Below are positions 1-57,991 of a stretch of 64,000 bases of DNA, piece by piece. The position numbers were made by a program, and so were the translations under genes. The stretch is taken from IMG/VR virus record IMGVR_UViG_3300027621_000003, positions 62,001-126,000 of that record. One strand, 5' to 3'. Under the pieces are notes generated by a model. The model was given only the letters and a program-made list of their open reading frames with translations. It did not search any database and was not told the DNA's origin. How positions within the stretch are numbered: position 1 is the stretch's first letter; each line of letters starts with the position of its first letter.

Positions 1-797
1 GGGTTTTTTATTTTTATTTGTGGGAGATTAATATTTGAGAAGTATTTTGACCAACCTTTATAATTCTCTAAATCATAAGGAGTTCCCCACTGTAACATGT
101 TTTCAATCTCAAATATACCAACTTTAAGACCATCATTAACTAACAGGTTATAAAGTAAACTTACATAATATTCACCATTTATATTAATGTCTAAATCAAT
201 AAGTTTTTGAGAATATTCTTTTAATAAATTACCCGATTTAAAATAATACGTACCATTTGATGCGTATTCATTCATTTTGTTGTCAGTAAAAGGTTCTTTT
301 TCTTTTATTTGAATAAGCTCCATATTACTTTCTTTACAGAAAGCATAATTGTCACTACCTAACATATGTGGGTGAAATCCTGTATAACAAGGAATTGCAC
401 CATCAAGATTTTTATCATTTACGTAATTAATAAAATTTTCAAAATCCCAATAAGTTCCATAATCACAATAACTCACAATTGTTTGTTTGTTATTATCAAT
501 AAAATCAAATATTTGATGAATTGCGTTTATTGGTCCCTTTGTGTTATTAGCAACTTCAAATATTCTACAATTTGGGGAAATATCATTAAGAACTTTCCTC
601 ATATTTGTTTGTTTTAAATGAATATCATTACAAATAAAAATAACATCCTTTACACCAGGAAATAAATCAACAACATGTTTTATTATAGGATAACCATCAA
701 CATCAATTAATGATTTGGTTTTTTCATATCCAGCGTCTATGAACCTTTTACCAATACCTGACATTGGTATAATTAATTGAATATTATTATCAATCAT
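1..797 (-). CDS. Sugar nucleotidyltransferase-like protein (NTP_transferase fold), runs off left edge
   Basis: Not in the ORF track. Manual translation from ATG at 797 gives MIDNNIQLIIPMSGIGKRFIDAGYEKTKSLIDVDG...SYCDY...NGEYYVS...WGTPYDL, with the IPMxGxGxRF..K signature; frame open to position 1. Confidence 0.8.
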   Translation of the reverse strand, partial: MIDNNIQLIIPMSGIGKRFIDAGYEKTKSLIDVDGYPIIKHVVDLFPGVKDVIFICNDIHLKQTNMRKVLNDISPNCRIFEVANNTKGPINAIHQIFDFIDNNKQTIVSYCDYGTYWDFENFINYVNDKNLDGAIPCYTGFHPHMLGSDNYAFCKESNMELIQIKEKEPFTDNKMNEYASNGTYYFKSGNLLKEYSQKLIDLDININGEYYVSLLYNLLVNDGLKVGIFEIENMLQWGTPYDLENYKGWSKYFSNINLPQIKIKN

Positions 798-798
798 A

Positions 799-1671
799 TT
801 AAAATGGCATATCAATGAATTTTTCGGGGTCATCAATGATTTTATTTATAATTAAATCATTCATATTGTAATTGGCTCCCTTAAAGTGGTTATAAAAACT
901 AATAATTTTATCTTTAGTTTCTTTATTGTTGAATATTTGGCTTGTGTCGTGTGAAAAATTATAAAATTTAAGATTATAACTATCATAAACACAATTTGAC
1001 TCAAGTATGTTAGTATCTGAATATTTGTTTGGTATTTGGGGAATATTTAATCTTTCTAAGATTTGATTAGTTATCCATATATTGAAATAAGGTGTTAAAT
1101 GATTTTGTGTGACAAATAATCTCTTATCTTTATAATGTTCTAATATAAAATCAGATACTTTTATATCACAAATTTCATCTTTCTCTTTCAATAATTCCAT
1201 ACAAACATTCATTCTTTCTTCAAAATAAAAATCAATTAAACCATTGTCATACAAATTTATAATTTCATCAATTTTACGTTTTTCTAAAATCAAAGACATT
1301 ATATTTTTCCATCCACAATTAATTAATGTTTGAAGTGTCCATCTTGGCGAAGCGTCTTCCCAATAAGTGGTATAAAATGATGAGTTGTATACATAGGGAA
1401 AACTAATTTTTACACAACTGTCTTTTAACATTGATTTTAAATTCTCTGTACCATAAACTCCGTGACTTTCTCCAAGTGGTTGGTATATAAAAACATCACA
1501 GTTTTTAAGTTCATCAACATCAATATTTACTAATTTTTTTGTTTGTTCTCTATCATGATTCACATAGGATATTAAATCATAATGTTTTTTGAATTCAGGT
1601 AAATTATTTAATAATTCATAAACATAAATAATGGCCTGACAATTGCCATATAGTATACATTTTTTTTTCAT
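799..1671 (-). CDS. WcbI-family polysaccharide biosynthesis putative acetyltransferase
   Basis: N-terminal YGNCQ motif, DVFIYQP, LFVTQNH; glycan-cluster context. Confidence 0.7.
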   Translation of the reverse strand: MKKKCILYGNCQAIIYVYELLNNLPEFKKHYDLISYVNHDREQTKKLVNIDVDELKNCDVFIYQPLGESHGVYGTENLKSMLKDSCVKISFPYVYNSSFYTTYWEDASPRWTLQTLINCGWKNIMSLILEKRKIDEIINLYDNGLIDFYFEERMNVCMELLKEKDEICDIKVSDFILEHYKDKRLFVTQNHLTPYFNIWITNQILERLNIPQIPNKYSDTNILESNCVYDSYNLKFYNFSHDTSQIFNNKETKDKIISFYNHFKGANYNMNDLIINKIIDDPEKFIDMPF

Positions 1672-1675
1672 TTTT

Positions 1676-2686
1676 TTAAAGTAATTTTAACCAATCTTTA
1701 TAGTAATAGATATTTTCTAATTCCGACCACTTAGTATACACAATTTGACTATCTTCTAAAAGGTATACAAAATTGTTTTTATTAATAAAGGATGAAAACA
1801 TAGAAAAACCAGAATATCTTTGAGATAATAAAACATTTTTTGAAATGGACATCAAATACATATCATAATATGTTTGTTCAAAATCAAATTCAAATGATGG
1901 GGTTTTTAAATAATAATCCTTATACATATTTTCCCATTTTAATTTTTCTTTCTCATCATCAGAACAAAATAAAATTTTTGAGTTTGGTTTTTTTTCTAAA
2001 AAAGAATCAATAGCAATTTTAGTTAATTCATTTAAATCATTTAATTCTCTATAATCAATTACCTCGTTATTTAATTTAGACAATCTTACTTTATCTTCTC
2101 TTCTTAAGTGTACTGTTAAATCAGGAATAATATCTACTTTTGAAACATCTATAAGTTTTTTTGTTGGTTTAAAACTATTACAGACAGTATAAAAAGTTTC
2201 AATAAATGACTTCAAATCTATTCCCAATTTATTTGTTTTAAAAGGGGAATAATAACTCATAATTAAATTATCGTTTAATACGTATTTTTGATAAAACGTT
2301 ATTGGTGATTCAACTCCACCAATATACCCATCAAAATATGATAAATTTAATAAATCCGATTCATTTTTTTCAATAAATGTGTTTTCAGGTAATTCAAAAT
2401 ATTTTAAAAAATTTTCATGTTTATAGTCAGAATATCTAACATCTTTAAAAAATTTACAGATGTGACCACTATTATCTAATTTTAAATTGTCTAAACTTGT
2501 GTTATCATCTTCTTTTGTGTGATAGTAAGATTTACCATCCCCATGATTACTATATAGTGGTTTCCATTTTGAACTAAAATCTGAGTTGTTTAATTTAGCA
2601 TATGTTGCTATTAAAGAAAAATCAATAAGTCTATCACACAAACCAGATAGTGGAGAGTTAGTCCATATTAAAGTATTATTATTCAT
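1676..2686 (-). CDS. Fucosyltransferase-fold (GT11/GT23-like) glycosyltransferase
   Basis: SGLCDRL, VHLRREDK (HxRxxD GDP-sugar motif), FCSDD, SGFS. Confidence 0.55.
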   Translation of the reverse strand: MNNNTLIWTNSPLSGLCDRLIDFSLIATYAKLNNSDFSSKWKPLYSNHGDGKSYYHTKEDDNTSLDNLKLDNSGHICKFFKDVRYSDYKHENFLKYFELPENTFIEKNESDLLNLSYFDGYIGGVESPITFYQKYVLNDNLIMSYYSPFKTNKLGIDLKSFIETFYTVCNSFKPTKKLIDVSKVDIIPDLTVHLRREDKVRLSKLNNEVIDYRELNDLNELTKIAIDSFLEKKPNSKILFCSDDEKEKLKWENMYKDYYLKTPSFEFDFEQTYYDMYLMSISKNVLLSQRYSGFSMFSSFINKNNFVYLLEDSQIVYTKWSELENIYYYKDWLKLL

Positions 2687-2689
2687 AAA

Positions 2690-3511
2690 TTATTTAAGTA
2701 TTTGCCAATTTTCGGGTATAGGATTTTCATAAATTGTGTAACCTTCTCTTTGGTTAGCATAATAATGAAAATACTTTGGGATTTGTTTTATTTTTTCGTT
2801 AGTTAAAGATAAAAAATAAATCAAAACTGAATAACTTGAATCAATAAAATGAATTTCTTTTGCGTTTTCTAAAATTTTAATTTGGTCAACCATAGTTTTT
2901 GAACCATCGTTTAATTGGTGGACATAAATGTCATTAGGTAATTTAGACTTATCAATATTTATCCCTCTTTGACTATCATCATGTAATACAATGTAATCTT
3001 TTTCAGGTAACAATTCATATTTTTTATTTTCACTATCGTCATCTCTGTAAACAGAAAATTCAGTTTCTCTAACTTTTAAATCAAGATTTTCAAACAAATA
3101 AAAAGAATGTGAAAAAGAAATGTTGTTATTTATATTTTTTCCTAAAAATGATTTCCATAACTCATAATCTTCTTTAAAACAACCAACTTTAATATTGTCA
3201 TAATCACTCCACTCTGAATAATCAACAAATTTGTGTGTATCATACTTTGTATCATATCTACAAGAATAATGGTCTGATTGCATACAAATCAAACAAGAAC
3301 TATTGTATATGTTTTGGTTAATTAATTTAGGTATAACACATTTTATATTTGGTTTGTGTTTATACATTTCTTCAATAACAATCCTTCTTGATTCGTCTAA
3401 TGCAAATATAATTAATTCATCGTACAAATTAGCATAGTAATTACATAATGAATTATTTGTAAATAAATCACCAAATCCTTGGTGATGCATTATTGTTGCT
3501 TTCTTATTCAT
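2690..3511 (-). CDS. Putative GT-B glycosyltransferase, paralog of 4593..5339
   Basis: HHQGFGD N-terminus, ILENAKEIHFIDSS, C-terminal NWQILK shared with paralog. Confidence 0.45.
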   Translation of the reverse strand: MNKKATIMHHQGFGDLFTNNSLCNYYANLYDELIIFALDESRRIVIEEMYKHKPNIKCVIPKLINQNIYNSSCLICMQSDHYSCRYDTKYDTHKFVDYSEWSDYDNIKVGCFKEDYELWKSFLGKNINNNISFSHSFYLFENLDLKVRETEFSVYRDDDSENKKYELLPEKDYIVLHDDSQRGINIDKSKLPNDIYVHQLNDGSKTMVDQIKILENAKEIHFIDSSYSVLIYFLSLTNEKIKQIPKYFHYYANQREGYTIYENPIPENWQILK

Positions 3512-3512
3512 A

Positions 3513-4586
3513 TTAATTGGTGTTATTTTTTACTTGATAGTCAACCCAGTTATATGTTTCTTTAAGACCATCAATTAATAATTTGAAAGGTTCCCATCCT
3601 ATTTTTTTACGAAAAAGTTTATTATCCGATTTTCTACCTTTCACACCTAATGGACATTTAAATCCATACTTATTTAAAAATTCATCACCGTAAAGATTGT
3701 CTATTTTTACATTTTTCTGAGATATATCAATTGTCATTTGGGCTAATTGATTTATTGTTACCATCTCTTCACTTCCTATATTTACGGGTTCCATAAAATC
3801 ACTATTCATCAAACGTTCTACGGCCTCTAAACACTCATCTATAAATAAAAACGAGCGTGTTTGTTGACCATCACCCCACACTTCAATAGAACCATTATCT
3901 TCACATTCAGAAACCTTTCTACACATAGCCGCAGGGGATTTTTCTTTACCACCTTTCCAAGTACCCATAGGACCAAAAACATTATGAAATCTACCAATTC
4001 GTACATTTAGATTATAATTTCTATGATAAGCTAAAAACAATCTTTCTGAAAATAATTTTTCCCACCCATATTCTGAATCAGGATTTGCTGGATAGGCTGA
4101 AGACTCTTCACAGTTTGGATTGTTTGGGTCTAATTGATTATGTTCAGGATACATACACGCAGAAGATGAATAGAATATTTTCTTTATATCGTATTTAACC
4201 GACTCATTTAATACATTTAAATTTATTAAAGATGAATTATGCATAACGTTTGCATCATTTTCACCAGTAAAAATGTATGCCGCACCACCCATATCTGCCG
4301 CCAATTGATAAACTTCATCAAATGAATCACCAATTACCTCATCAATATGATTTTCAAAATCAACAAATTTTGTTATAATTTTTTGGTCAGGAGAAAGTAA
4401 AACGTTTTTAACAACATTAATATCTTTTAAGTCTCCCTGTACAAATTCATGACAAATTTCATTTTCTTGAAAGTATTCGTGTTTTTTTACATCACATATT
4501 CTGACCCAACACCCCTCATCTTTTAATTTTTTTGCGAGGTGTCCACCGATAAATCCACCACCACCTAATACTAAAATTTTTTTCAT
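3513..4586 (-). CDS. gme: GDP-mannose 3',5'-epimerase (extended SDR)
   Basis: GGGGFIG, LAADMGG, SSACMYP, YGWEK, GGKEKSPAAMCRKV, WGDGQQTRSF: GME-specific motifs including catalytic Cys and Lys. Confidence 0.88.
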   Translation of the reverse strand: MKKILVLGGGGFIGGHLAKKLKDEGCWVRICDVKKHEYFQENEICHEFVQGDLKDINVVKNVLLSPDQKIITKFVDFENHIDEVIGDSFDEVYQLAADMGGAAYIFTGENDANVMHNSSLINLNVLNESVKYDIKKIFYSSSACMYPEHNQLDPNNPNCEESSAYPANPDSEYGWEKLFSERLFLAYHRNYNLNVRIGRFHNVFGPMGTWKGGKEKSPAAMCRKVSECEDNGSIEVWGDGQQTRSFLFIDECLEAVERLMNSDFMEPVNIGSEEMVTINQLAQMTIDISQKNVKIDNLYGDEFLNKYGFKCPLGVKGRKSDNKLFRKKIGWEPFKLLIDGLKETYNWVDYQVKNNTN

Positions 4587-4592
4587 ATTAAT

Positions 4593-5339
4593 TTAAATAA
4601 TTTGCCAATTTGTTAAAGTTTTTGGTTTAAGAAACATTTCTTTATAACCACGTAAACAATATGTTGATATTGTAATATGATTAAATAATTCATATTTACT
4701 ATCTACTTGATATAAAAACGCTCCCCATACAGAATCCAACACATGAATATCTTTTGCGTTTTGAAGTATTTTAATATAGTCAAAAAAAGTGTTTGTTGAC
4801 TTATTTAAATCAACTAATTTACTTGTAGGATGTTTATCTCTAATACTTGAAATAATACTATCATTTAATCCATGGTATAACACATAATCATTACCATGTT
4901 CCGCAACAAATTTTGAATATGTAGATTCTTCTAAGTTTAAATCTCTATCAAACTCAAACATTGACACTCTTTCAGAGTAATCAATCCCATATGATTTATA
5001 AAATTTCTCAACAAAAAAAAGATTATGGTCTCTATTACTAAATGCTCCTTGATAAGAATCATTTCTATAACCATCAAACATACCAAAAATTAATAATGAA
5101 TTATTGTGACGGTAGTCGTTTAAAAGAGATGATAAATTATTATCAATTTGAGATTTATCAACATAACATGCGGTCACATTTGGTAAAGATTTTAAGTAAA
5201 AATCAATTATCTCCTTAAAATCGTTTCTCATTAATAAATTAATTTTATTAAATTTCTTTGAAAGAATATTAACCAATGGGAGACAGTTAATTACATCTGT
5301 AAAACCTTGGTGAAATAAAATTGTTCCTGTATTATTCAT
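4593..5339 (-). CDS. Putative GT-B glycosyltransferase, paralog of 2690..3511
   Basis: FHQGFTD, ILQNAKDIHVLDSVW, NWQII. Confidence 0.45.
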   Translation of the reverse strand: MNNTGTILFHQGFTDVINCLPLVNILSKKFNKINLLMRNDFKEIIDFYLKSLPNVTACYVDKSQIDNNLSSLLNDYRHNNSLLIFGMFDGYRNDSYQGAFSNRDHNLFFVEKFYKSYGIDYSERVSMFEFDRDLNLEESTYSKFVAEHGNDYVLYHGLNDSIISSIRDKHPTSKLVDLNKSTNTFFDYIKILQNAKDIHVLDSVWGAFLYQVDSKYELFNHITISTYCLRGYKEMFLKPKTLTNWQII

Positions 5340-5340
5340 T

Positions 5341-5898
5341 TTATAAAAATTTTAACCAGCTAGTGTCATTATATGTTTTGTCGGGTTTACCAAAAGTTTC
5401 ATTAACCGCATTTACAACACCCATAAAACATGCTTCTAAATAATCGTGACCTGCAATAATACCGCCTTGTTTTATTTTGGGTAGCCACATATTAATATCT
5501 TCTTTACAAGAATTATACGAATGGTCACCATCAATATATACAAAATCTAATGAACCATCGGCAATTTCTTTAACAAATTCCTTAGAAGTTGTTTTATGTT
5601 TTTTAATAACACTAAAATTTTTTGTTCTAATATCAAAATTAGATTCAACAACGCTCATTGGGTATTTATCTGAGCAAGCATCACCTGGTGCGTATCCATT
5701 GGACCATGGGTCAATTGCATGTAACTCCTGTAGTCCATTTATATTATCCGCAAAAATGATTGTTGATTCACCTTGGTAGGAACCAACTTCAACCATGTTT
5801 GTAATTTTATTGTCTAAATCGTTTATTAAATCAATCAACCCTTGTTTGTAGGTTGAGTTTCTACATGTTGCTTCATGCAACTCAATTAATTCAGTCAT
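5341..5898 (-). CDS. Class I SAM-dependent methyltransferase (Methyltransf_24-like)
   Basis: VEVGSYQGES, AIDPW, DFVYIDGDHSY, GGIIAGHDY. Confidence 0.85.
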   Translation of the reverse strand: MTELIELHEATCRNSTYKQGLIDLINDLDNKITNMVEVGSYQGESTIIFADNINGLQELHAIDPWSNGYAPGDACSDKYPMSVVESNFDIRTKNFSVIKKHKTTSKEFVKEIADGSLDFVYIDGDHSYNSCKEDINMWLPKIKQGGIIAGHDYLEACFMGVVNAVNETFGKPDKTYNDTSWLKFL

Positions 5899-6571
5899 TT
5901 TCGTGTATTATATCATATAGTTTATAGTACTCATCACCAAAAATATAATGAAAAGTAATTTGTTTTTTTATTTCTTCGTTAGTATAGTTCCAATATTTGG
6001 GTTCTCTTGGATTGAATAATGAACTATTGATTTGTTCAATATTATTGTCCGAACAAAAAATACCAACATTCGCATCTGCATATGGTGTTTGTTTGGCATT
6101 ATAATCCCCATTTTCTTCACGGAAATAACCGTATTTACCCGAAGGGTATGCGTTTTTTAGAATCTCTAAGGCTTTAAAATTAAATAATGTTCCAGCACCA
6201 CCTGAATGATAGTTTATACCAAAACCAGCACTATTCTCATTCAAACGACCTATTTTTACAATTTCATCTGTGGGAAGTGTTTTGACCAGTTCAATTAAAT
6301 TTTTATAGTTAACAAAACTATCGTCATCAACATTAATAAACCAATCAAAATCTTTACAGTTTTCAAATAGATAAACAAAAGATTTTAAATTTTTTTCAGG
6401 GGCACTTTCATAAGTTTTATTATCCGTAACTTTTACGGTATGATTTTCTTTATCATCATAATCTGAAATTATTAAATAATTTTCAAAATCTTTTAACCAA
6501 GTATCTTGAATAATTTTAATTCTAGAATCTAAGTGTTTTTCAGATGAAATAATTGTAACTAATATTTTCAT
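5891..6571 (-). CDS. GT31 Fringe/core-1 beta-1,3-galactosyltransferase-like glycosyltransferase
   Basis: IQDTW, DWFINVDDDSFV, SGGAG, DANVG, ITFHY. Confidence 0.75.
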   Translation of the reverse strand: MKILVTIISSEKHLDSRIKIIQDTWLKDFENYLIISDYDDKENHTVKVTDNKTYESAPEKNLKSFVYLFENCKDFDWFINVDDDSFVNYKNLIELVKTLPTDEIVKIGRLNENSAGFGINYHSGGAGTLFNFKALEILKNAYPSGKYGYFREENGDYNAKQTPYADANVGIFCSDNNIEQINSSLFNPREPKYWNYTNEEIKKQITFHYIFGDEYYKLYDIIHEND

Positions 6572-7278
6572 AATAAAGTATAATGATAATCTCTTTTATC
6601 TGTATCTAAATAAATTTCACCAACAAATTTACTATCATCTCTTTCTAAAGAAAATGGTTTACTCCATGGTTCCATGGCGTGAAATGAAGAATTCACATAA
6701 GAACTATCAATATAATTTGGGTAAATAATGTCTCTAAGAAAATGCATATCCCACCATTTTTCATACCAATCAACATCTACCCTATAATTTTTAGATGTAT
6801 TGTATTCTATGCAGGAACTTTCCATATTAAAATTTGGTTGTCTTCTCATACCCCACATCCCACCTAAAATATGGTATCCGTGGTGTGGATGGTCTCTCAT
6901 TATGTGTAGTATTTTTTCACTTTCAACCCACTCATCAACAGACACTTTTTCTCTTTCAGTAATTCTAGAATCAATATCACGAACAATAAATAACTCAACA
7001 TCTTCATCATCATTTGGTAAAAATCTCCATTGCATGGCACTTATTAAAGGATTTGTAATTAACTTGAATTCAAGTTTATCATAATCAATATTTTTTTGAA
7101 TTTCAGAAATATCAAATAACTCGTTATGATATAAGTAAATGTGCCAATTTGGATAGTACTTTTGAATTAAATTAATGTTTTGATACAATCCACTAATGTA
7201 TTTGTTGTGATTTGTTTCCATAACTCTTTCCCAATCTAAGGGTGCTTTATACAAACAAAAAGATATTACTCGTTTCAT
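6568..7278 (-). CDS. Conserved RDxDxR/RDHP/GGMWG protein, probable GT-A glycosyltransferase
   Basis: ISFCLY, WRF, VRDIDSR, HIMRDHPHH, ILGGMWG; paralog at 28590..29249. Confidence 0.5.
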   Translation of the reverse strand: MKRVISFCLYKAPLDWERVMETNHNKYISGLYQNINLIQKYYPNWHIYLYHNELFDISEIQKNIDYDKLEFKLITNPLISAMQWRFLPNDDEDVELFIVRDIDSRITEREKVSVDEWVESEKILHIMRDHPHHGYHILGGMWGMRRQPNFNMESSCIEYNTSKNYRVDVDWYEKWWDMHFLRDIIYPNYIDSSYVNSSFHAMEPWSKPFSLERDDSKFVGEIYLDTDKRDYHYTLL

Positions 7279-8000: not shown

Positions 8001-8004
8001 AATA

Positions 8005-8478
8005 TTAAGTATAAATAGATTTAGATATGTTTATATAGTCAGTACAAATTGCGTATACATTTTTTGTTGTGGTAGATATAAGGTCAGTATCACTTAATAA
8101 CGGAATTATACATTTATCATTTAAGTTAAGTTCTAAATCATGAACCCAAATATGGTTAGTGCTTGTTAACACAAAATTATCTGATGTATGACAAAAAAAC
8201 ATGTATGGTGTTTCATAATTTTTCTGTAATTCACACAATCTTGATGCTGCATTTAAATTTTTACAATGAAACCATATTTTATGTTTTCTTTTTTCTATCC
8301 AAGTTTCCGATATTTCATAATCAGGAGTATCGTGACCTAAAAAAAACTTATTGTTTAAATAGTTAATATCCACCTCAACATCATAACCCGCAGAAATTGC
8401 GGTATCAATATATGATGGTGAATTTTCTCTACTTGGATTAGGGCCAATCATATTACCTCTATGTGAAATTAATTTCAT
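8005..8478 (-). CDS. Glycerophosphodiester phosphodiesterase-like (PLC-like) small protein
   Basis: ISHRGN, GYDVEVD, LGHD, WFHCKN, ICTDY. Confidence 0.65.
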   Translation of the reverse strand: MKLISHRGNMIGPNPSRENSPSYIDTAISAGYDVEVDINYLNNKFFLGHDTPDYEISETWIEKRKHKIWFHCKNLNAASRLCELQKNYETPYMFFCHTSDNFVLTSTNHIWVHDLELNLNDKCIIPLLSDTDLISTTTKNVYAICTDYINISKSIYT

Positions 8479-8783
8479 ATTTCTTCAATTCTAAGTGTTT
8501 TATCATCAATGAATAAATCGTAATAAGGTTTTGTAACATTTAATTCGTGGTGTTTAGCACCCCACTCATTAAGTTGTTTTTTTGTTAAATCATACCAATT
8601 TATTTGTGTACGACTACCACGAGCTGTCCAATATACAATTGTATTCCCATCATCATATAATCTATTAATTTTATCAATATTTTCTTTGATGGGTTTGGCG
8701 TTGTAGTAGTTTCTAGGTTCTGGTGTTTCACAGATTGTTTCATCTATATCAACATAAATGACTCTTGTTTTATTTATTTCCAT
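8475..8783 (-). CDS. Small HAD-superfamily phosphatase (capsule biosynthesis phosphatase-like)
   Basis: VDIDETIC, YWTARG, KPYYDLFIDDK. Confidence 0.75.
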   Translation of the reverse strand: MEINKTRVIYVDIDETICETPEPRNYYNAKPIKENIDKINRLYDDGNTIVYWTARGSRTQINWYDLTKKQLNEWGAKHHELNVTKPYYDLFIDDKTLRIEEI

Positions 8784-9444: not shown

Positions 9445-9458
9445 TATTATATCTTATT

Positions 9459-10907: not shown

Positions 10908-10917
10908 CGTTTTACTA

Positions 10918-13011: not shown

Positions 13012-13735
13012 ATATAAATTCTTTATGTTCGTTGTTTTGTTTAGTTATTTGATTACGTTCGTAATCTAAAAATTCGCCAGAAATTTTATATGGAGAATAC
13101 CCATTCCAATTATAAGTTTGTATATAAAAATTACTATAAGACCCTTGTGTGACATCTGAAAAATCACTTTTTTGTGGTGCTATTGGTAATATTGGACAGT
13201 AACTTTGTTTTTTTGTTGTTATGTTATTATAAATGTACTCATCAATTGCATAATAACCTTGTAAATTATCGGTCACAATTTGTTTAACATCATTAAATAT
13301 TGATTTATGATATACCATCATATTTGTTGCAAATACACCCCTATGTCTTTCTTCTTTAGGTGGAAAATTAGTAATATCAATTAACAATTTATGGTTTTTA
13401 CTAACATCAACAGGTCTATTATGTGTTGGGGATAAATTTAAAATACCAAATTCAGTATTTTCTAACTCAATGTCCAATTTTTCAATAAATGATTTTGCGT
13501 ATGGCATAAATGAACAATCATCTTCTATAACCATAACATATTCATAATCTCTTTCAATTGCAATATCTATGATTGCAATATGAGATAACGTGCATCCTAA
13601 ATGACTACCTGTATCAACAGCTTTGAATAATTCATAATCCCACCCAATGTATGACATTTCTTTTTGGATGTGTTCTAATCTGTCAATACGTTTTTCTAAA
13701 TTTAGAACAAATTTTGGTATTTCATTTAATTTCAT
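13001..13735 (-). CDS. GT25 glycosyltransferase (likely start MKLNEIPK at 13735)
   Basis: VLNLEKRIDR, GCTLSH, VIEDD, AIDEY. Confidence 0.8.
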   Translation of the reverse strand: MKLNEIPKFVLNLEKRIDRLEHIQKEMSYIGWDYELFKAVDTGSHLGCTLSHIAIIDIAIERDYEYVMVIEDDCSFMPYAKSFIEKLDIELENTEFGILNLSPTHNRPVDVSKNHKLLIDITNFPPKEERHRGVFATNMMVYHKSIFNDVKQIVTDNLQGYYAIDEYIYNNITTKKQSYCPILPIAPQKSDFSDVTQGSYSNFYIQTYNWNGYSPYKISGEFLDYERNQITKQNNEHKEFIYEN

Positions 13736-13739
13736 ATCT

Positions 13740-14339
13740 TTATATTTTTTCCCAATTTTCCCACACAAACTCATAATCATAAGTTAATTTGTGTGTTAAA
13801 GTTAATTTTTCTCTTATCCAATTTCTTAAATTTACAGAATCTGGTATAAACTGATGAAATTGTACCTGTATGTTTTTAAACATATGTATAACATCATTAT
13901 CAATTAAACTCTTTAATACTGGAAATTCATCACCCTCAATATTAATCTTTATTAAATCAATGTTGTCTATGTTATTTTCATTTAAAAATTTAACAAATGA
14001 AACAACTTTGGCCAATATTTTATTTTCAGCGTTAATATAAAAAGAACTTCCATCGTTTAACAATGCAATCTCAATTGATTTATCTTCGTCTGAAATTCCA
14101 AAATTATAAACTTTTATTTTTTCTTTATCTTTAAATTTTTCTACCAAATTATTATATAACTCAGGTATAGGTTCAAAAACATGTACATAACATTGATATT
14201 TATCGTAAATTTTTTGAGTCCAACTTCCGTGATATCCACCTAAGTCAAACACAATTGAATTTTCGTTTAGGGGGTAATTAACTCTTAATGTGTCGTCACC
14301 ACCAATTTTAAACCATTCTTGTAAATCTTCGTAATTCAT
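13740..14339 (-). CDS. FkbM-family methyltransferase (likely start MNYEDL at 14339)
   Basis: VFDLGGYHG, VFEP, IKINIEGDE, QVQFH. Confidence 0.85.
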   Translation of the reverse strand: MNYEDLQEWFKIGGDDTLRVNYPLNENSIVFDLGGYHGSWTQKIYDKYQCYVHVFEPIPELYNNLVEKFKDKEKIKVYNFGISDEDKSIEIALLNDGSSFYINAENKILAKVVSFVKFLNENNIDNIDLIKINIEGDEFPVLKSLIDNDVIHMFKNIQVQFHQFIPDSVNLRNWIREKLTLTHKLTYDYEFVWENWEKI

Positions 14340-14358
14340 TTTTTTATTTTTTTTATGT

Positions 14359-15138
14359 TTATATGATAACCCAATTTTCTGGATAAAGGTCATCTGTAAT
14401 GTATGAATGTAATGTCGGACCAAACCATTTTTTTGGTGATATTACAATATTTTCTTTTTTATTTAACCATGCACCCCACCAACTAAAACTACTATTTGCA
14501 ATAATATTATTATTACAGAATGACATCAAATACAATTCTTCATAGTCGGATAAATCGGTAATAAAAACTTTGTTTTTAATATATTCAAACTGTGTTTTAC
14601 AATATTCAATATCATCTGAAAATATTAAATAAACTGATTCAGAACCAATTATTTCATATGATTTTTGATAGTAATCATGTGATAAAACTGGATGGTAATT
14701 TTCTAAATGAAGATAATCACCTCGTCTTACATGTATAGAACAAGTTTTATTTTTTAATATTTCTCCGTATATAGATTGTAATTTATTTTTAATTTCATCA
14801 TTTGGTTCAAACAAAGATAAAATTCCTTCTCGGTTTTTTTTAAAATATTTATCACTTTGAAAAAAACCTGATAATTTTATACTTCTATCAAACTTAGGTA
14901 TTTCACAGTAATGAAAACTACCCACATTATAAACTTCATACGGTACTTCTGTATTTGAAAATTTTACTTTTTGAAATATTGTGTTTTTATATGAGCTTAA
15001 TGGGTTGTGTCCATTATAATGTTTAGTTTCATCAACAATAAAATCTGAGTCTTCGTCTATTGAGGTAGAATACCCTGTAGCGATTTGAAACATTGTATTA
15101 CCAAGACCTCCGTGTATATTTGTTGAAATAACATTCAC
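14359..15138 (-). CDS. GT11 alpha-1,2-fucosyltransferase-like
   Basis: GGLGNTMFQ, GFFQS, IHVRRGDY, FSDD, IIANSSFSWWGAWL. Confidence 0.9.
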   Translation of the reverse strand: MNVISTNIHGGLGNTMFQIATGYSTSIDEDSDFIVDETKHYNGHNPLSSYKNTIFQKVKFSNTEVPYEVYNVGSFHYCEIPKFDRSIKLSGFFQSDKYFKKNREGILSLFEPNDEIKNKLQSIYGEILKNKTCSIHVRRGDYLHLENYHPVLSHDYYQKSYEIIGSESVYLIFSDDIEYCKTQFEYIKNKVFITDLSDYEELYLMSFCNNNIIANSSFSWWGAWLNKKENIVISPKKWFGPTLHSYITDDLYPENWVII

Positions 15139-15143
15139 TTGTT

Positions 15144-15908
15144 TTAATCTTTAAACATTAAATTTGATTTATCATCATATCCTCGTCTATGTGCAAAAAT
15201 TACAGAACCAATAGATTTTGCACCTTCCAAGTTTCTACTTGAATCCGTCCAATATCCGTATATGTCAATTTCTTGTTTTGAACAACCATATCTTGAAGCC
15301 AATATAGACAAAATACTTTGGTCATGACGATGATTTTCTTGATTTCCATCTAAACAACCTTCAATTAACGAAAACGCATACGCATCATCAAATAATTGTT
15401 GATATTTTCCATTAGATTTATATCCAACCAATCCAGCCCAAAGTTGGTTATCACTAAGTTCGCTTTCTGTAGCAGAAACACATTCAACACATTCTGAGTG
15501 TGTAAAATTTCTATTTATGTGAACATCACCAACTAAAAATATTTCTTCGTTTTCAATCTTATCATAGATTTCTTTAATTGATTTCAAAGGACATGCTCCT
15601 GAGTCCAACCATAAAACATTATGTCCCAAACTACTTGCATTTTTCATACAGTAAATTTTATAGATGTAAGATTTTGGTTCCAAAAATTTTGAATGTAATT
15701 CTGTTGCGTTTGATGGGAAATTTAAAACTTCAACATTTTTTAATGTGTTTAAATAATTAATTTCATTTTCTTCCAATCCCAAGTTAAAAACAAAAATTCT
15801 ATCAACAACTTCCAAACTATCTTTATGTACATTACTTATCAATGTTAAAAGAGAACTATAGTAGGGACTATTGGTCGCGGTAACTAAAATATTATTATAC
15901 ATTTTCAT
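15144..15908 (-). CDS. DUF1647-like putative GT-A glycosyltransferase
   Basis: FNLGL, VLWLDSG, NHRHDQSILSIL. Confidence 0.55.
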   Translation of the reverse strand: MKMYNNILVTATNSPYYSSLLTLISNVHKDSLEVVDRIFVFNLGLEENEINYLNTLKNVEVLNFPSNATELHSKFLEPKSYIYKIYCMKNASSLGHNVLWLDSGACPLKSIKEIYDKIENEEIFLVGDVHINRNFTHSECVECVSATESELSDNQLWAGLVGYKSNGKYQQLFDDAYAFSLIEGCLDGNQENHRHDQSILSILASRYGCSKQEIDIYGYWTDSSRNLEGAKSIGSVIFAHRRGYDDKSNLMFKD

Positions 15909-16710
15909 TTAAATAAGTTTCAATTATTTTTTCAGGGTAAATATATTTTTTAGCAGATTCAAAATTACTTTGGATTGAATTTATTTTAGAGTTATACAAT
16001 TCCACATCTAAAGTATCAATAATTGTTGATAATTCATTTTCATCGTTGATGAAAATAACACCATTAGTATCAAAATAATTTTCAATGTTTTTTGTACCCC
16101 AATAAATTGGAATGGTACCTGTCAAGAAACAATCTAATAGTTTTTCAGTAAAATAATCCGACTCAATTGAATTTTCAATTACAACTGAAAATCTATAGTC
16201 TTTTAGACCATCAACTTTTAAATCAATAGGTTTATCACAACCACTACCATAAAAATCAATTTTACCACTATCTTTAAACATATTATAGATTGAGTGTCTT
16301 AATCTATGACCATGATTCCAAGTTTTCCATGAAAAAATTGTGCTAATAGATTTTAATTTTTCGTGAATACCCATATCCTCTTCTCTCATCCATGTTCCAC
16401 CAGCTGGTATGTAAACAAAATTATCAATTCTGTCGTTTAAATCTTTTATGAAACTAAAAATATATTTAAAATTTTTGTAGTCTCTAACAGCCTTTCCTTG
16501 ATGGTCACCATTAATAATGGGTGGTTCTAATAACCAAACACAATTAATTTTTTCGGGATTTATTTCTTGTGAAAATGCCATACTGTCGGTGTATATTGCA
16601 ATATCATACTCGGTTGTTGTCCTTGACCATTCTACAGGACTTGGTAAATTTAAAGATATCCCTGACACACCGTCAAAGTTACCGTCAATTAATTTTATTG
16701 TTTTTGTCAT
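15895..16710 (-). CDS. GT10 alpha-1,3/4-fucosyltransferase-like
   Basis: YRFSVVIENSIESDYFTEKLLDCFLTGTIPIYWG matches the GT10 alpha-1,3 motif. Confidence 0.85.
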   Translation of the reverse strand: MTKTIKLIDGNFDGVSGISLNLPSPVEWSRTTTEYDIAIYTDSMAFSQEINPEKINCVWLLEPPIINGDHQGKAVRDYKNFKYIFSFIKDLNDRIDNFVYIPAGGTWMREEDMGIHEKLKSISTIFSWKTWNHGHRLRHSIYNMFKDSGKIDFYGSGCDKPIDLKVDGLKDYRFSVVIENSIESDYFTEKLLDCFLTGTIPIYWGTKNIENYFDTNGVIFINDENELSTIIDTLDVELYNSKINSIQSNFESAKKYIYPEKIIETYLNENV

Positions 16711-16721
16711 ATAAATAAGTA

Positions 16722-17969: not shown

Positions 17970-18026
17970 GAATATATTTTTTCATAAAAATATTAAAGGA
18001 TTTGAAAAAGTTAATAGGAAATAATA

Positions 18027-21000
18027 TTATAATCCATATTTTGATTTATCGGCGTTAAAGTTTTGTAATACTTGTGCTGAGGTAAGTGCTGCGTTGTATA
18101 AACGAGTTATACCAATTTTTCCATCAAACCATTGAGAAAACTCTCCACCATTGTAACTACCAATGTAAAGTGGGTTAGTTGAGTTTAATATACTTGCCAA
18201 ACTATGACCCACACTTCCTATACTTACACCATTTACAAATGTTTGAAGTGTATTGGCGGCAACATTGGTAAACACATAAACTATTTGGTACCATGTGTTA
18301 GTTGTTCCAGTGTAGAAGGTACTATCAACAAATAATGATGAACCAGTACCACTACCTGAACCTAATTGAGCATAATATGTGGTGTTAGTTGTTCTAATAC
18401 TATAACTTACATCTTGGGATAGACCTCCATTATCAAACTTTCCAAGAACAACATCGTTACCTAACACTGCTTGATTAACCCATACTTCCATAGTCCAGTT
18501 CCCACTTCCTGGTTCTAATAAGGGATTATCCGCAACACTAACTTGAGATGAGGCTCCATTATATGTGAAGTATGGTGATGTATATGTGATATTGGACATT
18601 GAACCATTTAATTCATTTCCTGATAAATCATTAATTGTTGTACCAGTACCAGGGTAACTTGATAAATTACTTGGGTCATAATATAAAACAAGATTAGCGG
18701 TTACTGGAACCTCAGGTGTTGAGGTTGGTGTTGGTGTTGGTGTTGGTGTTGTTGTATTAGTTGGTGTAACTGTTACTGTTGGTGTTTGTGTTATTGTAGG
18801 AGTAGGCGTTTCAGTATTTGTTGGTGTTTGTGTTATTGTTGGTGTTTGTGTTATTGTAGGTGTGGGTGTTTCAGTATTTGTAAGTGTTGGAGTTACAGTC
18901 TGAGTCGGAGTTGGTGTCTGAGTCGGAGTTTCTGTATTTGTAAGTGTTGGAGTTATAGTATTAGTTGGAGTATTAGTTGGAGTTTCTGTAGGTGTTGGCG
19001 TATTAGTAGGAGTTTCAGTATTAGTCGGTGTAGATGTTGGTGTATTAGTAGGTGTTTCAGTGTTAGTAGGTGTTTGTGTTGGCGTATTAGTAGGAGTTTC
19101 AGTATTAGTCGGTGTATTAGTTGGTGTAACACTTGTTGTTGGTGTAACTGTCGGCGTAATAGTTGGAGTTGGAGTTGCCGATGGACACATACCTAAATCA
19201 ACAATAACCAAAGAATTAACACCACCAGTTCTTACAATACTATTTTTGGTTGCACATAAATAAACATCAGGATTTGGTGGTAAAATGTTTCCAACAATTA
19301 AAGTACCATAACAATCCGTATAAGAATAAATAACGTTTCCTCTATCAGATTCATTTATTAATTGATAATATTCACATCCTGTATATCCTGGTGTTGATGT
19401 AACACTTGGTGTTGGTGTTTTAGTTGATGTAACACTTGGTGTTGGTGTTTTAGTTTGTGTATTAGTTGGTGTTGGTGTTTTAGTTTGTGTGTTAGTTTGT
19501 GTGTTAGTAGGCGTTGTCGTAGGTGTTTTAGTGTTAGTAGGCGTTGTCGTAGGTGTTTTAGTATTAGTTGGTGTACGTGTTAAATTTATAGTGTTGGTCG
19601 GTGTCTGAGTAGATGTTACCGTTGGTGTTACCGTTGGTGTTAATGTCTGAGTAGATGTTACCGTTGGTGTTAATGTTTGTGTTGCAGTTGCGGTTGGAGT
19701 TAATCCAGTTGTTGCGGTTGGTGTAACCGTTTTTGTTGGTGTTAGAGTTAAAGTTGGTGTTACTGTAGGAGTTTCAGTGTTTGTTGGTGTTACTGATGAC
19801 GTAGGTGTGTTTGTGGGTGTATGTGTAGGTGTTATTGTAGGTGTAGGTGTAGGGAAATCACAATTTAAACAATATGGATTTAAAAAATTATAAATTGGTC
19901 TTAAAATTCTGGCGTTGTGTTGAATTTCAGGAACCGATAATGGTTTTGCATACATATTAAATTTGGATATTGCACCATCAAAAGTACCGGCAAAATTTTG
20001 TTCTATTAATATATTGGTTGTAAGGCCACTTAATGTTGTTCCACTCAAAATATTTGGTGGGAACAATTCAGGGTCTTGTGTGTAGTAATTAATGTCGTTT
20101 GTTGGTACCGCGCTAAAAATTAAATTTTCATGTAATCCTTGTGTTCCACCACCCCAAGAAATATTAAATGGTACTCCAACTTGATTTTCTTTGTGTCCAA
20201 ATAAACCACGAGGTATGATTTCTTCAACATCTTCAAATACATAAAATATTATACCATTAATGTAAATTTTCATTCTACCTCTACGGTATATTTTTTCTAA
20301 AATCCAAAGATTGTTTAACTCAACAAGTTCTTCTATTGTTGGAATTAATTCATAATGTGTTATTGGTGGTGATATTAATGAAACTGAATTATTTACGGTA
20401 CTGGCAGTATATGGGAAGATAGTGATTGTCCCAAGACCACCACGATAAAACAAATCGCACGTATCTAACCATGTATATCGTTCAAAGACTACATCCACTA
20501 AAACCCAATGTTCTTGTTCGTCATATGTTGTTCCACTACAATTATCATAAATTCCTCTATTGGTACAATAGTTATTTATTGAATAACCAGTTACTGAACC
20601 AGGACCTAAAGTTTCACAAGAACCTGTGTAAATACAATCACCTGTTATGGTTAAAGTTCTTATACAAATTTTTGGATTGTGTGGGTCACCACTAAATTTG
20701 ATTGCAATTGCATTAGACATTGAATCATATTCAGGATTATGTTCAGGAATTGGAACTGGTGGTTCGGGACAACAACAAAGGTCTACTTGAGTATGTGAAT
20801 CTGTAGTTCCTGTTGGTGGATATACTAATATACAATTAGAATCATTATATTGCAAATAACCCGGCTTGGTTATTATTGAAAATTTAATGGTTCCCAATCC
20901 AACTCGTTTTGTTGTTACAAATTTAAAATCTCCGGTTGATGCTGTGTATCCAACAACAGTTCCCTCAAGATATTGAGCGTCGTCATGATAAATTAATGCC

Positions 21001-21971
21001 GTATCACCCGAAACCCATAATAAATTTGGAGAAACAGTTAATGTTCTACCTGTTGTTGTTAAATCAAAAATTGTTGTTGATGAAGTTGTATATCCCGAAT
21101 ATAAATCAACACAAAAACAACTTGTTAATCCAGTCAACGGTGTTGTAATTCTGTAATAAGATGGGTCACCTGAATTTGTTCCGGCTGCGTGGTGCCAATA
21201 CTTATTTTCGGCTCTTGTACCCATGTAAAAGAATATACCAGCATTATTTGGGTAATATTCATTTAATGTGGTTTGTCCTGAACTTGGAGAATAGACATTT
21301 GATAATCTTGGCTTTAAAGTCATCTCTACCGTCCATCCTTTTGGATATCTTTCAGGTAAAATTTTATAATCGTATCCGAACAATTCATAAAATCCTTGAT
21401 AAAAACCACCATATAATTCTTGGTAATTTCCAATAGTTTGTGCACTATATGACACAACATTATAAATCGTTCCTGCGGTTACACCCGAAAATCTTGTGTT
21501 TGGAGTCCAAGTATAACCAGTAACTTGATGTAATTTTAATCTTCTATCAAATTTATACCTATCAAATTTTTCATTAGCAGGTAGTAAGCCATTAGTATAA
21601 GTTATTGATTGACCTGTCATTCCGGTTACCAATCCGTTGTCAGTTCCTGTTAATCCAATATCACAAATTGTTTTTGAAGAATAACAATCAATTAGAACAT
21701 CATTTGGGTTGTAGTAGTTTTCAGAAATTAAAATGTTATCAAAGTCATAATTTCCATATGTTAATGAAAAATTTTGATTACTTCCTGTAAAATTAATATC
21801 AAACTTAACTGGTAACACGTCACCATTATATGCGCCAATAATATATGGTGAAAAAATAACTTCTTCGTTATAATCTCGTTCATCTGATGCTAAAGAAAGG
21901 TCTGTAACCTCCAAAAATGGTGATAAATACCATTTTTTATAGACATATTGGTTAATGTTCTGATAAGCCAT
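18027..21971 (-). CDS. Large virion-type protein with two Thr/Pro mucin-like tracts and a C-terminal LamG/ConA domain
   Basis: 1314 aa; (TPT)n tracts separated by a small Cys-containing domain; C-terminal LVLYYD..SYPGTG..DLSGN..WYQIV..IGS..FDGKIG..LYNAAL..QNFNA LamG signature. Confidence 0.8.
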   Translation of the reverse strand: MAYQNINQYVYKKWYLSPFLEVTDLSLASDERDYNEEVIFSPYIIGAYNGDVLPVKFDINFTGSNQNFSLTYGNYDFDNILISENYYNPNDVLIDCYSSKTICDIGLTGTDNGLVTGMTGQSITYTNGLLPANEKFDRYKFDRRLKLHQVTGYTWTPNTRFSGVTAGTIYNVVSYSAQTIGNYQELYGGFYQGFYELFGYDYKILPERYPKGWTVEMTLKPRLSNVYSPSSGQTTLNEYYPNNAGIFFYMGTRAENKYWHHAAGTNSGDPSYYRITTPLTGLTSCFCVDLYSGYTTSSTTIFDLTTTGRTLTVSPNLLWVSGDTALIYHDDAQYLEGTVVGYTASTGDFKFVTTKRVGLGTIKFSIITKPGYLQYNDSNCILVYPPTGTTDSHTQVDLCCCPEPPVPIPEHNPEYDSMSNAIAIKFSGDPHNPKICIRTLTITGDCIYTGSCETLGPGSVTGYSINNYCTNRGIYDNCSGTTYDEQEHWVLVDVVFERYTWLDTCDLFYRGGLGTITIFPYTASTVNNSVSLISPPITHYELIPTIEELVELNNLWILEKIYRRGRMKIYINGIIFYVFEDVEEIIPRGLFGHKENQVGVPFNISWGGGTQGLHENLIFSAVPTNDINYYTQDPELFPPNILSGTTLSGLTTNILIEQNFAGTFDGAISKFNMYAKPLSVPEIQHNARILRPIYNFLNPYCLNCDFPTPTPTITPTHTPTNTPTSSVTPTNTETPTVTPTLTLTPTKTVTPTATTGLTPTATATQTLTPTVTSTQTLTPTVTPTVTSTQTPTNTINLTRTPTNTKTPTTTPTNTKTPTTTPTNTQTNTQTKTPTPTNTQTKTPTPSVTSTKTPTPSVTSTPGYTGCEYYQLINESDRGNVIYSYTDCYGTLIVGNILPPNPDVYLCATKNSIVRTGGVNSLVIVDLGMCPSATPTPTITPTVTPTTSVTPTNTPTNTETPTNTPTQTPTNTETPTNTPTSTPTNTETPTNTPTPTETPTNTPTNTITPTLTNTETPTQTPTPTQTVTPTLTNTETPTPTITQTPTITQTPTNTETPTPTITQTPTVTVTPTNTTTPTPTPTPTSTPEVPVTANLVLYYDPSNLSSYPGTGTTINDLSGNELNGSMSNITYTSPYFTYNGASSQVSVADNPLLEPGSGNWTMEVWVNQAVLGNDVVLGKFDNGGLSQDVSYSIRTTNTTYYAQLGSGSGTGSSLFVDSTFYTGTTNTWYQIVYVFTNVAANTLQTFVNGVSIGSVGHSLASILNSTNPLYIGSYNGGEFSQWFDGKIGITRLYNAALTSAQVLQNFNADKSKYGL
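18715..19180 (-). repeat. Thr/Pro low-complexity coding repeat 2 (TNTETPT-type units)
   Basis: Degenerate GGTGTT/GGAGTT tandem units on the + strand; boundaries approximate. Confidence 0.9.
19390..19855 (-). repeat. Thr/Pro low-complexity coding repeat 1
   Basis: Degenerate tandem units encoding TPTxT; boundaries approximate. Confidence 0.9.
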
Positions 21972-29908: not shown

Positions 29909-29909
29909 A

Positions 29910-30980: not shown

Positions 30981-31017
30981 TCTTTCTTTTATTATTATAT
31001 TTCATAAATTATAATTA

Positions 31018-32632: not shown

Positions 32633-32643
32633 GTAATCAGTAT

Positions 32644-33696: not shown

Positions 33697-33698
33697 TC

Positions 33699-46673: not shown

Positions 46674-46755
46674 ATTATTATAGAATAATTTAACATATAA
46701 ATATATCCATATGCCAAAAAATTCTGTTTGGGCTTAGTAAAAACCCTAAATAAAT

Positions 46756-57949: not shown

Positions 57950-57991
57950 AATTTTACTATATAAATATAGCAATAATGGTAAATTGTTAAA

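Follow-up and report, generated by a model that had tools for sequence, protein, structure and literature searches.

What does a glycosyltransferase of family GT60 do in a phage genome, directly behind a gene for a protein built of threonine/proline (T/P) repeats? The question is raised by a 64,000-nucleotide stretch of the IMG/VR virus record IMGVR_UViG_3300027621_000003 (positions 62,001–126,000, hereafter the window), in which a gene for a 1314-aa modular T/P and LamG protein is followed on the minus strand by a GT60 gene and a long series of further glycan-related genes. To our knowledge, phage-encoded protein glycosylation is documented in very few cases, and although GT60 is the sister family of the enzymes that initiate animal mucin glycans, we know of no member from phages or prokaryotes with an established substrate. 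We favour, at a probability of roughly 0.5, the reading that this locus is a phage-encoded cytoplasmic protein O-glycosylation cassette. Within that reading, the GT60 enzyme probably acts on the adjoining T/P proteins, the chances that these acceptors are virion components are about even, and the proposal that the whole 22-gene set builds their glycan is a tentative one.

By all sequence and fold features checked, membership of the window enzyme in GT60 is solid, and the profile check proposed in the initial annotation of this DNA bore the family assignment out. Besides the Pfam match (table), the protein carries a DxH motif (D92-S-H94 within QIDSHMRF), the D and H of which are invariant in 26 and 30 diverse homologues; this variant of the DxD metal/nucleotide-sugar motif distinguishes GT27 and GT60 (PMC7185993). 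The AlphaFold2 (AF2) model (30 sequences, predicted local distance difference test score (pLDDT) 94.5, predicted template modelling score 0.91) has a GT-A fold nearest to GT27: ranks 1–18 of a Foldseek search against the PDB are all polypeptide N-acetylgalactosaminyltransferases (E 5e-11 to 1e-9), to which the catalytic core aligns over 250–290 columns at 3.8–4.7 Å. PDB sequence searches with GT60 and with both HtrL-like proteins gave no match, and the nearest entries in a viral structure library are labelled 'Glycosyltransferase, GlcNAc' and come from uncultured tailed phages, Megaviridae and Pandoravirus. The protein begins straight at the catalytic domain. Members of the family have no ricin-type lectin domain at the C terminus (PMC8724618); none is recognised by Pfam in the window enzyme, the model of which ends in a beta domain of about 90 aa (~aa 325–415) without family assignment. 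GT60 is known from prokaryotes and protists (PMC7185993), and the characterised members are protist polypeptide alpha-N-acetylglucosamine (GlcNAc) transferases, those of Dictyostelium and Trypanosoma cruzi starting mucin-type O-glycans with GlcNAc (PMC8724618). The window enzyme is predicted to be an initiating polypeptide alpha-N-acetylhexosamine (HexNAc), in particular GlcNAc, transferase. An exhaustive search returned 4458 GT60 family clusters; many family representatives (P0121–P0145) are giant proteins of 800–2461 aa with 2–4 tandem GT60 domains. A literature search for phage GT60 enzymes or O-glycosylated phage T/P proteins turned up no relevant work.

The pairing of the two genes described in the initial annotation stands, as the layout of open reading frames (ORFs) places the GT60 start 57 bp downstream of the T/P gene, and no terminator-like site was found between them. 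The 1314-aa protein comprises a conserved 705-aa N-terminal module that closes in an invariant CxxC (C701, C704), a first T/P block (~aa 706–880, nt ~19332–19856), a small Cys-containing domain, a second T/P block (~aa 946–1112, nt ~18636–19136) and the LamG region. T/P-rich ORFs were defined by at least 40 residues lying in 40-residue windows with at least 60% T+P; 344 residues of this protein fall within such windows. Its T/P composition is far above chance, as are the imperfect tandem repeats that form the two blocks at the DNA level, with periods that are multiples of six. Neither a signal peptide nor a membrane segment was found in it.

Three indirect lines of evidence suggest a possible virion location of the T/P proteins, the second being the main one. 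The LamG region of the 1314-aa protein matches phrog_8510 'virion structural protein' (1e-14). The 705-aa module is 46–97% identical in more than 30 related loci, where it stands alone (640–720 aa) or is fused to differing T/P and distal parts (up to 1786 aa), and phage fibres and receptor-binding proteins are built in this way, with a proximal part that stays constant and distal binding domains that are exchanged. Finally, two further candidate acceptors are encoded in the head module, namely a 140-aa protein with a 75-aa T/P tail and a 329-aa protein in which ~185 aa of T/P(S/V) repeats lie between two small Cys-motif domains. The T/P gene behind the capsid gene was rejected as a clade-wide feature, since the position holds a T/P ORF in the closest relatives and nowhere else (7/69). 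A fold for the 705-aa module was sought in the PDB; there was no match below E 0.01 (TM ≤0.14), and the weak, generic jelly-roll lectin folds were discarded. We also observed that a motif, aromatic-x-[D/E/N]-C-x-x-C, ends small domains just ahead of T/P linkers (aa 76 and 285 of the 329-aa protein). It is present in 17 of 126 distinct T/P proteins of the clade versus 1 of 1301 other ORFs, and in many T/P ORFs of loci L020–L088, L101, L232 and L237.

The initial annotation had proposed co-occurrence and synteny across relatives as a check, and the result is positive both within the clade and in independent bacterial lineages. An IMG/VR scan yielded 80 close-relative loci (GT60 identity 77–100%), 78 of them with upstream sequence; a co-oriented T/P-rich ORF lies directly upstream of GT60 in 56/78, usually after a gap of 50–120 bp, and three further loci have shorter T/P stretches there. 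These ORFs are not one conserved gene, because their sizes (175–3289 aa), copy numbers (1–4 in tandem) and architectures (~40) vary widely. Their lectin or adhesin domains include LamG, legume lectin, PA14, CBM5/12, DUF285, InlB B-repeat, beta-propeller, BNR, fn3 and PKD, and many non-repeat parts have no recognisable domain. In a second viral scan (80 loci, GT60 identity 49–80%), a T/P ORF was directly upstream in ~20 loci and ~33 had none within 10 kb. A looser 'mucin-like' definition (S+T+P ≥65%) was abandoned: capsid-centred control loci scored as high as GT60 loci under it, and the strict definition was kept because the looser one is overwhelmed by ORFs antisense to genes for acidic scaffold proteins. 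An example of a Ser-rich antisense ORF in the window is a 160-aa frame (46198–46680, plus strand) opposite a 537-aa gene (45060–46673), which is almost certainly spurious.

A bacterial scan (one genome per species) gave 80 GT60 loci from Bacteroidota, Gemmatimonadota, Burkholderiaceae, Sphingomonas, Verrucomicrobiota, Acidobacteriota, Halieaceae and others, many on megabase contigs and therefore truly chromosomal. T/P-rich ORFs are present in 31–33 of the 80, all within ~5 kb of GT60, and adjoin the GT60 homologue in Sphingomonas, Gemmatimonadaceae, Opitutaceae, Vicinamibacterales and Halieaceae. Those directly upstream and co-oriented comprise a 1200-aa Sphingomonas protein with an Rv2525c-like domain and proteins of Gemmatimonadaceae, Opitutaceae and Vicinamibacterales, while others are small, with little beyond a twin-arginine signal and a T/P repeat. 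Twin-arginine motifs occur in 10 of 35 bacterial T/P ORFs, which suggests export by the twin-arginine translocation (Tat) route after modification in the cytoplasm. In Halieaceae and Gemmatimonadaceae, GT60 loci also carry a PqqD-like domain, either free or fused to the T/P tail. The operons concerned (L126 6828–13501; L119 6889–13466; L103 9242–12984; L099 8510–10561) hold a T/P-repeat protein with a Tat-type RRKLLQALG signal or an N-terminal PqqD-like domain, a ~580-aa HtrL_YibB-domain protein and a free PqqD-like protein, with two GT60 paralogues in those of Halieaceae, and have the appearance of a system dedicated to the maturation of glycoproteins or glycopeptides.

When GT60 lineages (80% identity clusters, n=117) were weighted equally, T/P-ORF density was 0.16 per kb in the first kb upstream of GT60 and ~0.05 per kb within 5 kb, and fell to 0.01–0.02 per kb at 5–10 kb, ~10-fold below the upstream kb; around the capsid gene of the same clade it was 0.0175 per kb. 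With each lineage scored by majority rule, direct upstream adjacency was found in 15/117 lineages (P ~1e-8 at a 2% background) and a T/P ORF within 5 kb in 54/117 (46%). The association of GT60 with T/P proteins is thus real and recurs independently, but it is partial.

On the other side of GT60, gene content was compared among 71 close relatives with at least 9 kb of downstream sequence. GT25 is present in 33/71 and an HtrL-like gene in 42/71, versus GT10 in 8/71, GT11 in 3/71 and GT61 in 2/71. The minimal cassette consists of GT60, then GT25 (directly after GT60 in L024), a short HtrL-like gene and a long (~560 aa) one. The slot between GT60 and the long HtrL-like gene is filled in other relatives by glycan-tailoring genes too (GT34, DUF273, DUF3431, PLOD-type glycosyltransferase, TylF/CmcI/FkbM O-methyltransferases, UDP-galactopyranose mutase and nucleotidyltransferase). 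GT60 has HtrL-like partners in 83/86 and 73/80 viral loci, in 3/3 phages of the XacN1 type and in 34/80 bacterial loci. A constant GT60 with constant partners is flanked by hypervariable T/P proteins on one side and hypervariable tailoring enzymes on the other.

The window cassette is unusually expanded, with 22 genes versus 2–5 in most relatives. Together with the T/P gene these make 23 co-oriented minus-strand genes with gaps of at most 57 bp and many overlapping stop and start codons, and this packing in one orientation suggests a single transcription unit. No protein of the cluster has a membrane helix (19-residue hydrophobic stretch), and the enzymes are soluble. Gene identities (table) rest on the ORF layout and on Pfam/NCBIfam profile scans, which upheld the earlier calls of GT10, GT11, FkbM, GT25, GT61, GT31, methyltransferase and WcbI genes. 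Three other calls need qualification: the DUF1647 similarity is below threshold, the GT2 has a single weak match, and the gene labelled GME encodes a generic nucleoside-diphosphate (NDP) sugar short-chain dehydrogenase/reductase (SDR), for which the best model, GDP-L-fucose synthase, scores 92 bits where the cut-off is 500. The HtrL-like label holds through homologues in relatives, which match HtrL_YibB at 4.9e-30; the window protein has no Pfam match of its own. The gene list of the initial annotation, correct as to the presence of the genes named, omitted the kinase-like, aldolase/epimerase and haloacid dehalogenase (HAD) phosphatase genes, five proteins without a family and the nucleotidyltransferase. 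As the last of these runs past the left end of the window, the glycan cluster is longer than the window shows.

Table 1 Features of the window, in window coordinates (E-values or scores of the best match where given).
Feature	Position	Strand	Match or remark
Sugar-phosphate nucleotidyltransferase, 23rd gene	3–797	-	NTP_transferase 1.1e-6; continues past left window end
WcbI-like	799–1671	-	3.5e-19
336-aa protein, no family	1676–2686	-	
273-aa protein, no family	2690–3511	-	
NDP-sugar SDR epimerase/dehydratase/reductase	3513–4586	-	4e-38
248-aa protein, no family	4593–5339	-	
Methyltransf_24 methyltransferase	5341–5898	-	1e-20
Fringe/Galactosyl_T (GT31-type), 226 aa	5891–6571	-	1e-16
236-aa protein, no family	6568–7278	-	
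Weak GT2-like, 241 aa	7275–8000	-	single weak match 5.7e-4
157-aa protein, no family	8005–8478	-	
Small HAD phosphatase, resembles capsule-biosynthesis phosphatase	8475–8783	-	TIGR01689 1e-7
Class II aldolase / L-ribulose-5-P 4-epimerase-like enzyme	8770–9444	-	PF00596 8.8e-24
482-aa protein, C-terminal phosphoribulokinase/uridine-kinase-like domain	9459–10907	-	PF00485 2.5e-34
GT61-type glycosyltransferase	10918–12135	-	PF04577 4.3e-15
HtrL/YibB-like protein, 291 aa	12136–13011	-	3.9e-73 against profile of HtrL_YibB-positive homologues
GT25-type glycosyltransferase	13001–13780	-	PF01755 3.3e-16
FkbM-type methyltransferase	13740–14423	-	PF05050 5.5e-12
GT11-type (alpha-1,2-fucosyltransferase family)	14359–15138	-	PF01531 2.7e-27
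254-aa protein, weak DUF1647 similarity	15144–15908	-	E 0.0065, sub-threshold
GT10-type (alpha-1,3/4-fucosyltransferase family)	15895–16710	-	PF00852 5.6e-13
GT60-family glycosyltransferase, 415 aa	16722–17969	-	PF11397 3.1e-64, 218 bits against cut-off 21
1314-aa modular T/P and LamG protein, candidate acceptor	18027–21971	-	Laminin_G_3 1.6e-18, aa 1138–1301
GT2_5	27160–28590	+	
Fringe-like	29246–29908	+	
UDP-glucose dehydrogenase-like	29910–30980	+	
Weak GT1	32644–33696	+	
Weak GT2	33699–34505	+	
140-aa protein, small N-terminal domain and 75-aa T/P tail, second candidate acceptor	42655–43077	-	directly downstream of major capsid gene
T4-like major head protein (major capsid), 618 aa	43167–45023	-	
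Head protease	47010–47741		
Portal	49212–51020		
Large terminase	51051–52820		
329-aa protein, third candidate acceptor	56984–57973	-	inside head/packaging module
FtsH-like ATP-dependent protease, 664 aa	59668–61662	+	phrog_4871, 1.7e-240; beside structural module

The kinase, aldolase and HAD genes form a trio within the cluster (8475–10907, minus strand) that only 2/71 relatives carry and that may form a branch pathway yielding an unusual donor sugar, a pentose or pentulose; the kinase-like protein scores 188 bits with NCBIfam phosphoribulokinase, cut-off 236. A second glycosylation region lies on the opposite strand (27160–34505), with PhoH and a nucleotidase-like gene interleaved. A T4-type late promoter was considered for the 1314-aa gene, which has TATAAATA 24 nt before it, and was rejected, as the motif occurs 18 times in the window versus 12.4 expected and leaves the structural genes unmarked. 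Scans of the window for sigma-70 promoters and terminators gave counts equal to those of shuffled sequence.

The window is a fragment from an abundant freshwater clade of T4-like jumbo myophages. Contigs with the identical GT60 protein, several of them >200 kb, come from 48 blocks of public metagenome assemblies, the Joint Genome Institute samples that carry the protein are freshwater, and close homologues are many (more than 6,900 homologues scored, the best 120 all with ≥80% identity). G+C content is low across the 64 kb (25–36%), PhoH, dUTPase and exonuclease genes are encoded, and a tRNA scan of the window found none. The best relatives of the capsid protein are those of an uncultured 484-kb phage, Microcystis phage Mel-JY01 and Flavobacterium 'immuto' phages, from which a Bacteroidota host is our guess. 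Identity with the 'Moraphages' (PMC12619734) was ruled out, since that lineage lies outside the T4 group and the window capsid protein is T4-like. The capsid protein aligns to T4-like capsid proteins in two pieces (~50–60% coverage), which implies an insertion of ~200 aa, rich in Gly, Ser, Asn and Thr, around residues 110–350.

Among isolated phages, only the Xanthomonas jumbo phage XacN1, Xoo-sp13 and the Stenotrophomonas phages CM1 and RAS14 have a GT60 homologue (44–47% identity), and they share the HtrL-like partners. Purified XacN1 virions contain at least two Schiff-stained glycoproteins (PMC5852040, Suppl. Fig. S4), which the authors credit to the two transferases of the phage, the bands being unassigned to proteins (PMC5852040). 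One of these two transferases, ORF334, is the GT60 homologue, 47% identical to the window enzyme. In XacN1-type phages, genes for a carbamoyltransferase and two HtrL-like proteins of 286 and 546 aa (ORF332 and ORF330 in XacN1) come after GT60 (L001 13409–18946, ORF333–ORF330). The core thus equals that of the window's clade but has another tailoring enzyme, and, in contrast to the window, there is no GT10, GT11, GT25 or GT61.

As to acceptor, donor, glycan, virion location and biological role, we infer the following scheme. The soluble GT60 would transfer a HexNAc, most likely alpha-GlcNAc from UDP-GlcNAc, in the cytoplasm onto threonines in the T/P repeats of the lectin-tipped protein encoded upstream, and probably also onto the two further T/P-repeat proteins of the head module. 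GT25 and the HtrL/YibB-like partners, with strain-specific transferases, O-methyltransferases and sugar-nucleotide enzymes, would lengthen and decorate the sugar. The glycoproteins would then be assembled on the particle or set free at lysis; the likeliest products are fibre-like virion appendages, in which the glycan may stiffen linkers, protect from proteases and diversify the surface antigenically. A GlcNAc–Gal–Fuc type of chain and a part in shielding or grazing resistance, both put forward in the initial annotation, are hypothetical.

Parts of the scheme have counterparts in known systems. The protist GT60 enzymes (Dictyostelium Gnt2, T. cruzi OGNT and the cytoplasmic Gnt1, which acts on Skp1) share family, DxH motif and GT-A fold with the phage enzyme, and their acceptors are Thr/Pro-rich mucin-like repeats, as proposed here. 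The spacer of Dictyostelium PsA is a PTVT-type repeat, very like the TPTVTPT units of the phage. Gnt1 and the phage GT60 are alike in being soluble and cytoplasmic. The phage enzyme differs in its phage or bacterial setting, without Golgi or membrane anchor, and in its extra C-terminal beta domain and HtrL/YibB-like partners; its activity is predicted. With animal GT27, the best structural match, the proposed shared logic is an initiator on S/T/P-rich repeats followed by elongation of GT31 and fucosyltransferase type, but GT27 is another CAZy family with only 10–17% sequence identity, no ricin lectin domain is recognised by Pfam in the phage enzyme, and the phage process would be cytoplasmic rather than Golgi-based, with UDP-GlcNAc the probable donor. 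Cytoplasmic glycosylation is known from bacterial HMW1C-type systems and serine-rich-repeat adhesins (GtfA/GtfB with accessory transferases, SecA2/Y2 export), and in the latter GlcNAc initiation on a long Ser/Thr-rich repeat encoded at the same locus is followed by strain-variable elongation and then export or assembly. Their initiator, however, is a GT-B enzyme of GT4 and is not phage-borne, and export uses the accessory Sec system, whereas the bacterial GT60 loci described here have Tat-type signals. Mycobacteriophages, as summarised in PMC12619734, encode transferases that attach O-glycans to terminal extensions of their own structural proteins, and these glycans shield the particle (Freeman et al. 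2023). As far as that account goes, the system has actinobacterial hosts and employs other transferase families, with two transferases versus ~10 here; it modifies capsid and tail-tube proteins at short C-terminal extensions, whereas the acceptors proposed here are lectin-tipped modular proteins with long T/P repeats. The two differ in enzyme family, type of acceptor, scale and partners.

Several observations weigh against this scheme. No T/P-rich ORF lies directly upstream of GT60 in 22/78 close relatives, about half of the GT60 lineages have none within 5 kb, synteny within one clade is partly inherited and not independent, and T/P linkers might do without glycosylation. The T/P stretch closest to GT60 in XacN1-type phages measures a mere 41–52 aa and lies 8–9 kb away, in a giant 3313-aa protein beside baseplate genes. 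With regard to virion location, tblastn of the 705-aa module against 50,697 isolated phages gave no match, and its AF2 model is poor (pLDDT 50). Only the GT60, GT25 and HtrL-like genes are conserved among relatives, the rest being mostly strain-specific. GT25, GT10, GT11, HtrL and WcbI are classically families of lipopolysaccharide (LPS) or capsule enzymes, and a literature search for a functional study of a bacterial or phage GT60 member found none.

Of the alternatives, remodelling of the host cell surface survives best, though we consider it unlikely. The soluble transferases would act at the inner membrane face on undecaprenyl-linked or lipid A–core acceptors and use the host's initiating transferase, flippase and ligase; LPS or capsule would be altered, with superinfection exclusion or avoidance of grazers and other phages as the outcome, and the T/P gene would be an unrelated neighbour. 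GT25, HtrL_YibB, WcbI, GT10 and GT11 are indeed families of lipooligosaccharide (LOS), O-antigen and capsule synthesis, and strain-to-strain turnover of transferases resembles that of O-antigen loci. Large cyanomyoviruses (P-SSM2, S-SCSM1, S-SCSM2R), T4-like and aquatic as well, have at least 10 transferases of GT10, GT11, GT25 and GT2 with NDP-sugar epimerases, which were read, without experiments, as host LPS modification (PMC12801897), a further point against protein acceptors; GT60 or a T/P acceptor is not reported from these regions. The initial annotation had argued from the absence of flippase, polymerase and membrane-spanning genes for protein acceptors. It is true that the 64 kb encode no lipid-carrier initiating transferase, flippase/ABC exporter, polymerase or ligase, but the argument is weak, because bacterial O-antigen/LOS transferases of the GT25, GT10, GT11, HtrL and WcbI families are soluble too, such that solubility does not discriminate, and the host could supply the membrane steps. 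What a host-surface target leaves unexplained is why the constant element belongs to a polypeptide-transferase family, why T/P ORFs pile up beside it across phages and unrelated bacteria, and why Tat-signal T/P proteins and PqqD-like adaptors accompany bacterial GT60.

The cassette might alternatively be divided in function, a reading that we regard as plausible though less probable than the main one: GT60, GT25 and the HtrL-like proteins would glycosylate T/P proteins, and the strain-specific genes (GT10, GT11, GT61, Fringe-like, kinase/aldolase/HAD, WcbI and the plus-strand transferases at 27–35 kb) would serve a host polysaccharide or a separate glycoconjugate. The restriction of conservation to the first three, the expansion of the window cassette relative to those of relatives and the second transferase group on the opposite strand are all in keeping with such a division. 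It is at odds with the tight packing of the whole set in one orientation, and with the fact that the variable genes of relatives, too, are glycan-tailoring and are inserted between GT60 and the long HtrL-like gene.

It is improbable that the pairing is a coincidence, with T/P repeats serving as plain flexible linkers and GT60, placed beside a hypervariable fibre locus, acting on a host protein or small molecule. T/P linkers do occur far from GT60, in the two head-module proteins, a nearby T/P gene is absent from many GT60 lineages, and within-clade counts are inflated by relatedness. Against this, enrichment is 6- to 40-fold over the clade's own background, and at least five unrelated bacterial phyla show the pairing, some of it with T/P proteins that have no other domain. 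Hypermodification of phage DNA, in which the transferases would glycosylate hydroxymethylated bases for restriction evasion, is very improbable: there are phage transferases that assemble glycans on DNA (Pyle et al. 2024, as cited in PMC12619734), the plus-strand GT2_5 gene has a dUTPase/dCTP-deaminase-like gene and an exonuclease as neighbours (25.8–27.2 kb), and the XacN1 GT60 gene is near the DNA polymerase, but action on DNA is not known for families GT60, GT10, GT11, GT25, GT31 and GT61, profile scans of the 64-kb window gave no pyrimidine hydroxymethylase, and the T/P association would be left unexplained.

Protein O-glycosylation by the cassette would have implications beyond this phage, of which the broadest is speculative and, in our judgement, somewhat doubtful. 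In this broadest form, GT60, HtrL/YibB-like partners and T/P acceptors would make up a widespread, undescribed prokaryotic system of mucin-type O-glycosylation, kin to the eukaryotic mucin-starting enzymes; in bacteria it would operate in the cytoplasm with PqqD-like adaptors and Tat export, and freshwater jumbo phages would have captured it to coat lectin-tipped fibres with hypervariable glycans. The enzyme–acceptor pair is small and soluble, so its proposed activity is directly testable in Escherichia coli. If GT60 does glycosylate the T/P repeats, abundant freshwater phages make their own mucin-like glycoproteins, with consequences for particle stability, adhesion, host recognition and antigenic diversity, and some of the transferase clusters of aquatic phages that are routinely labelled 'LPS modification' would be reassigned. 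It would also add a new bacterial route of protein O-glycosylation, with Tat-exported T/P glycoproteins, and provide a prokaryotic context for the origin of mucin-type O-glycosylation.

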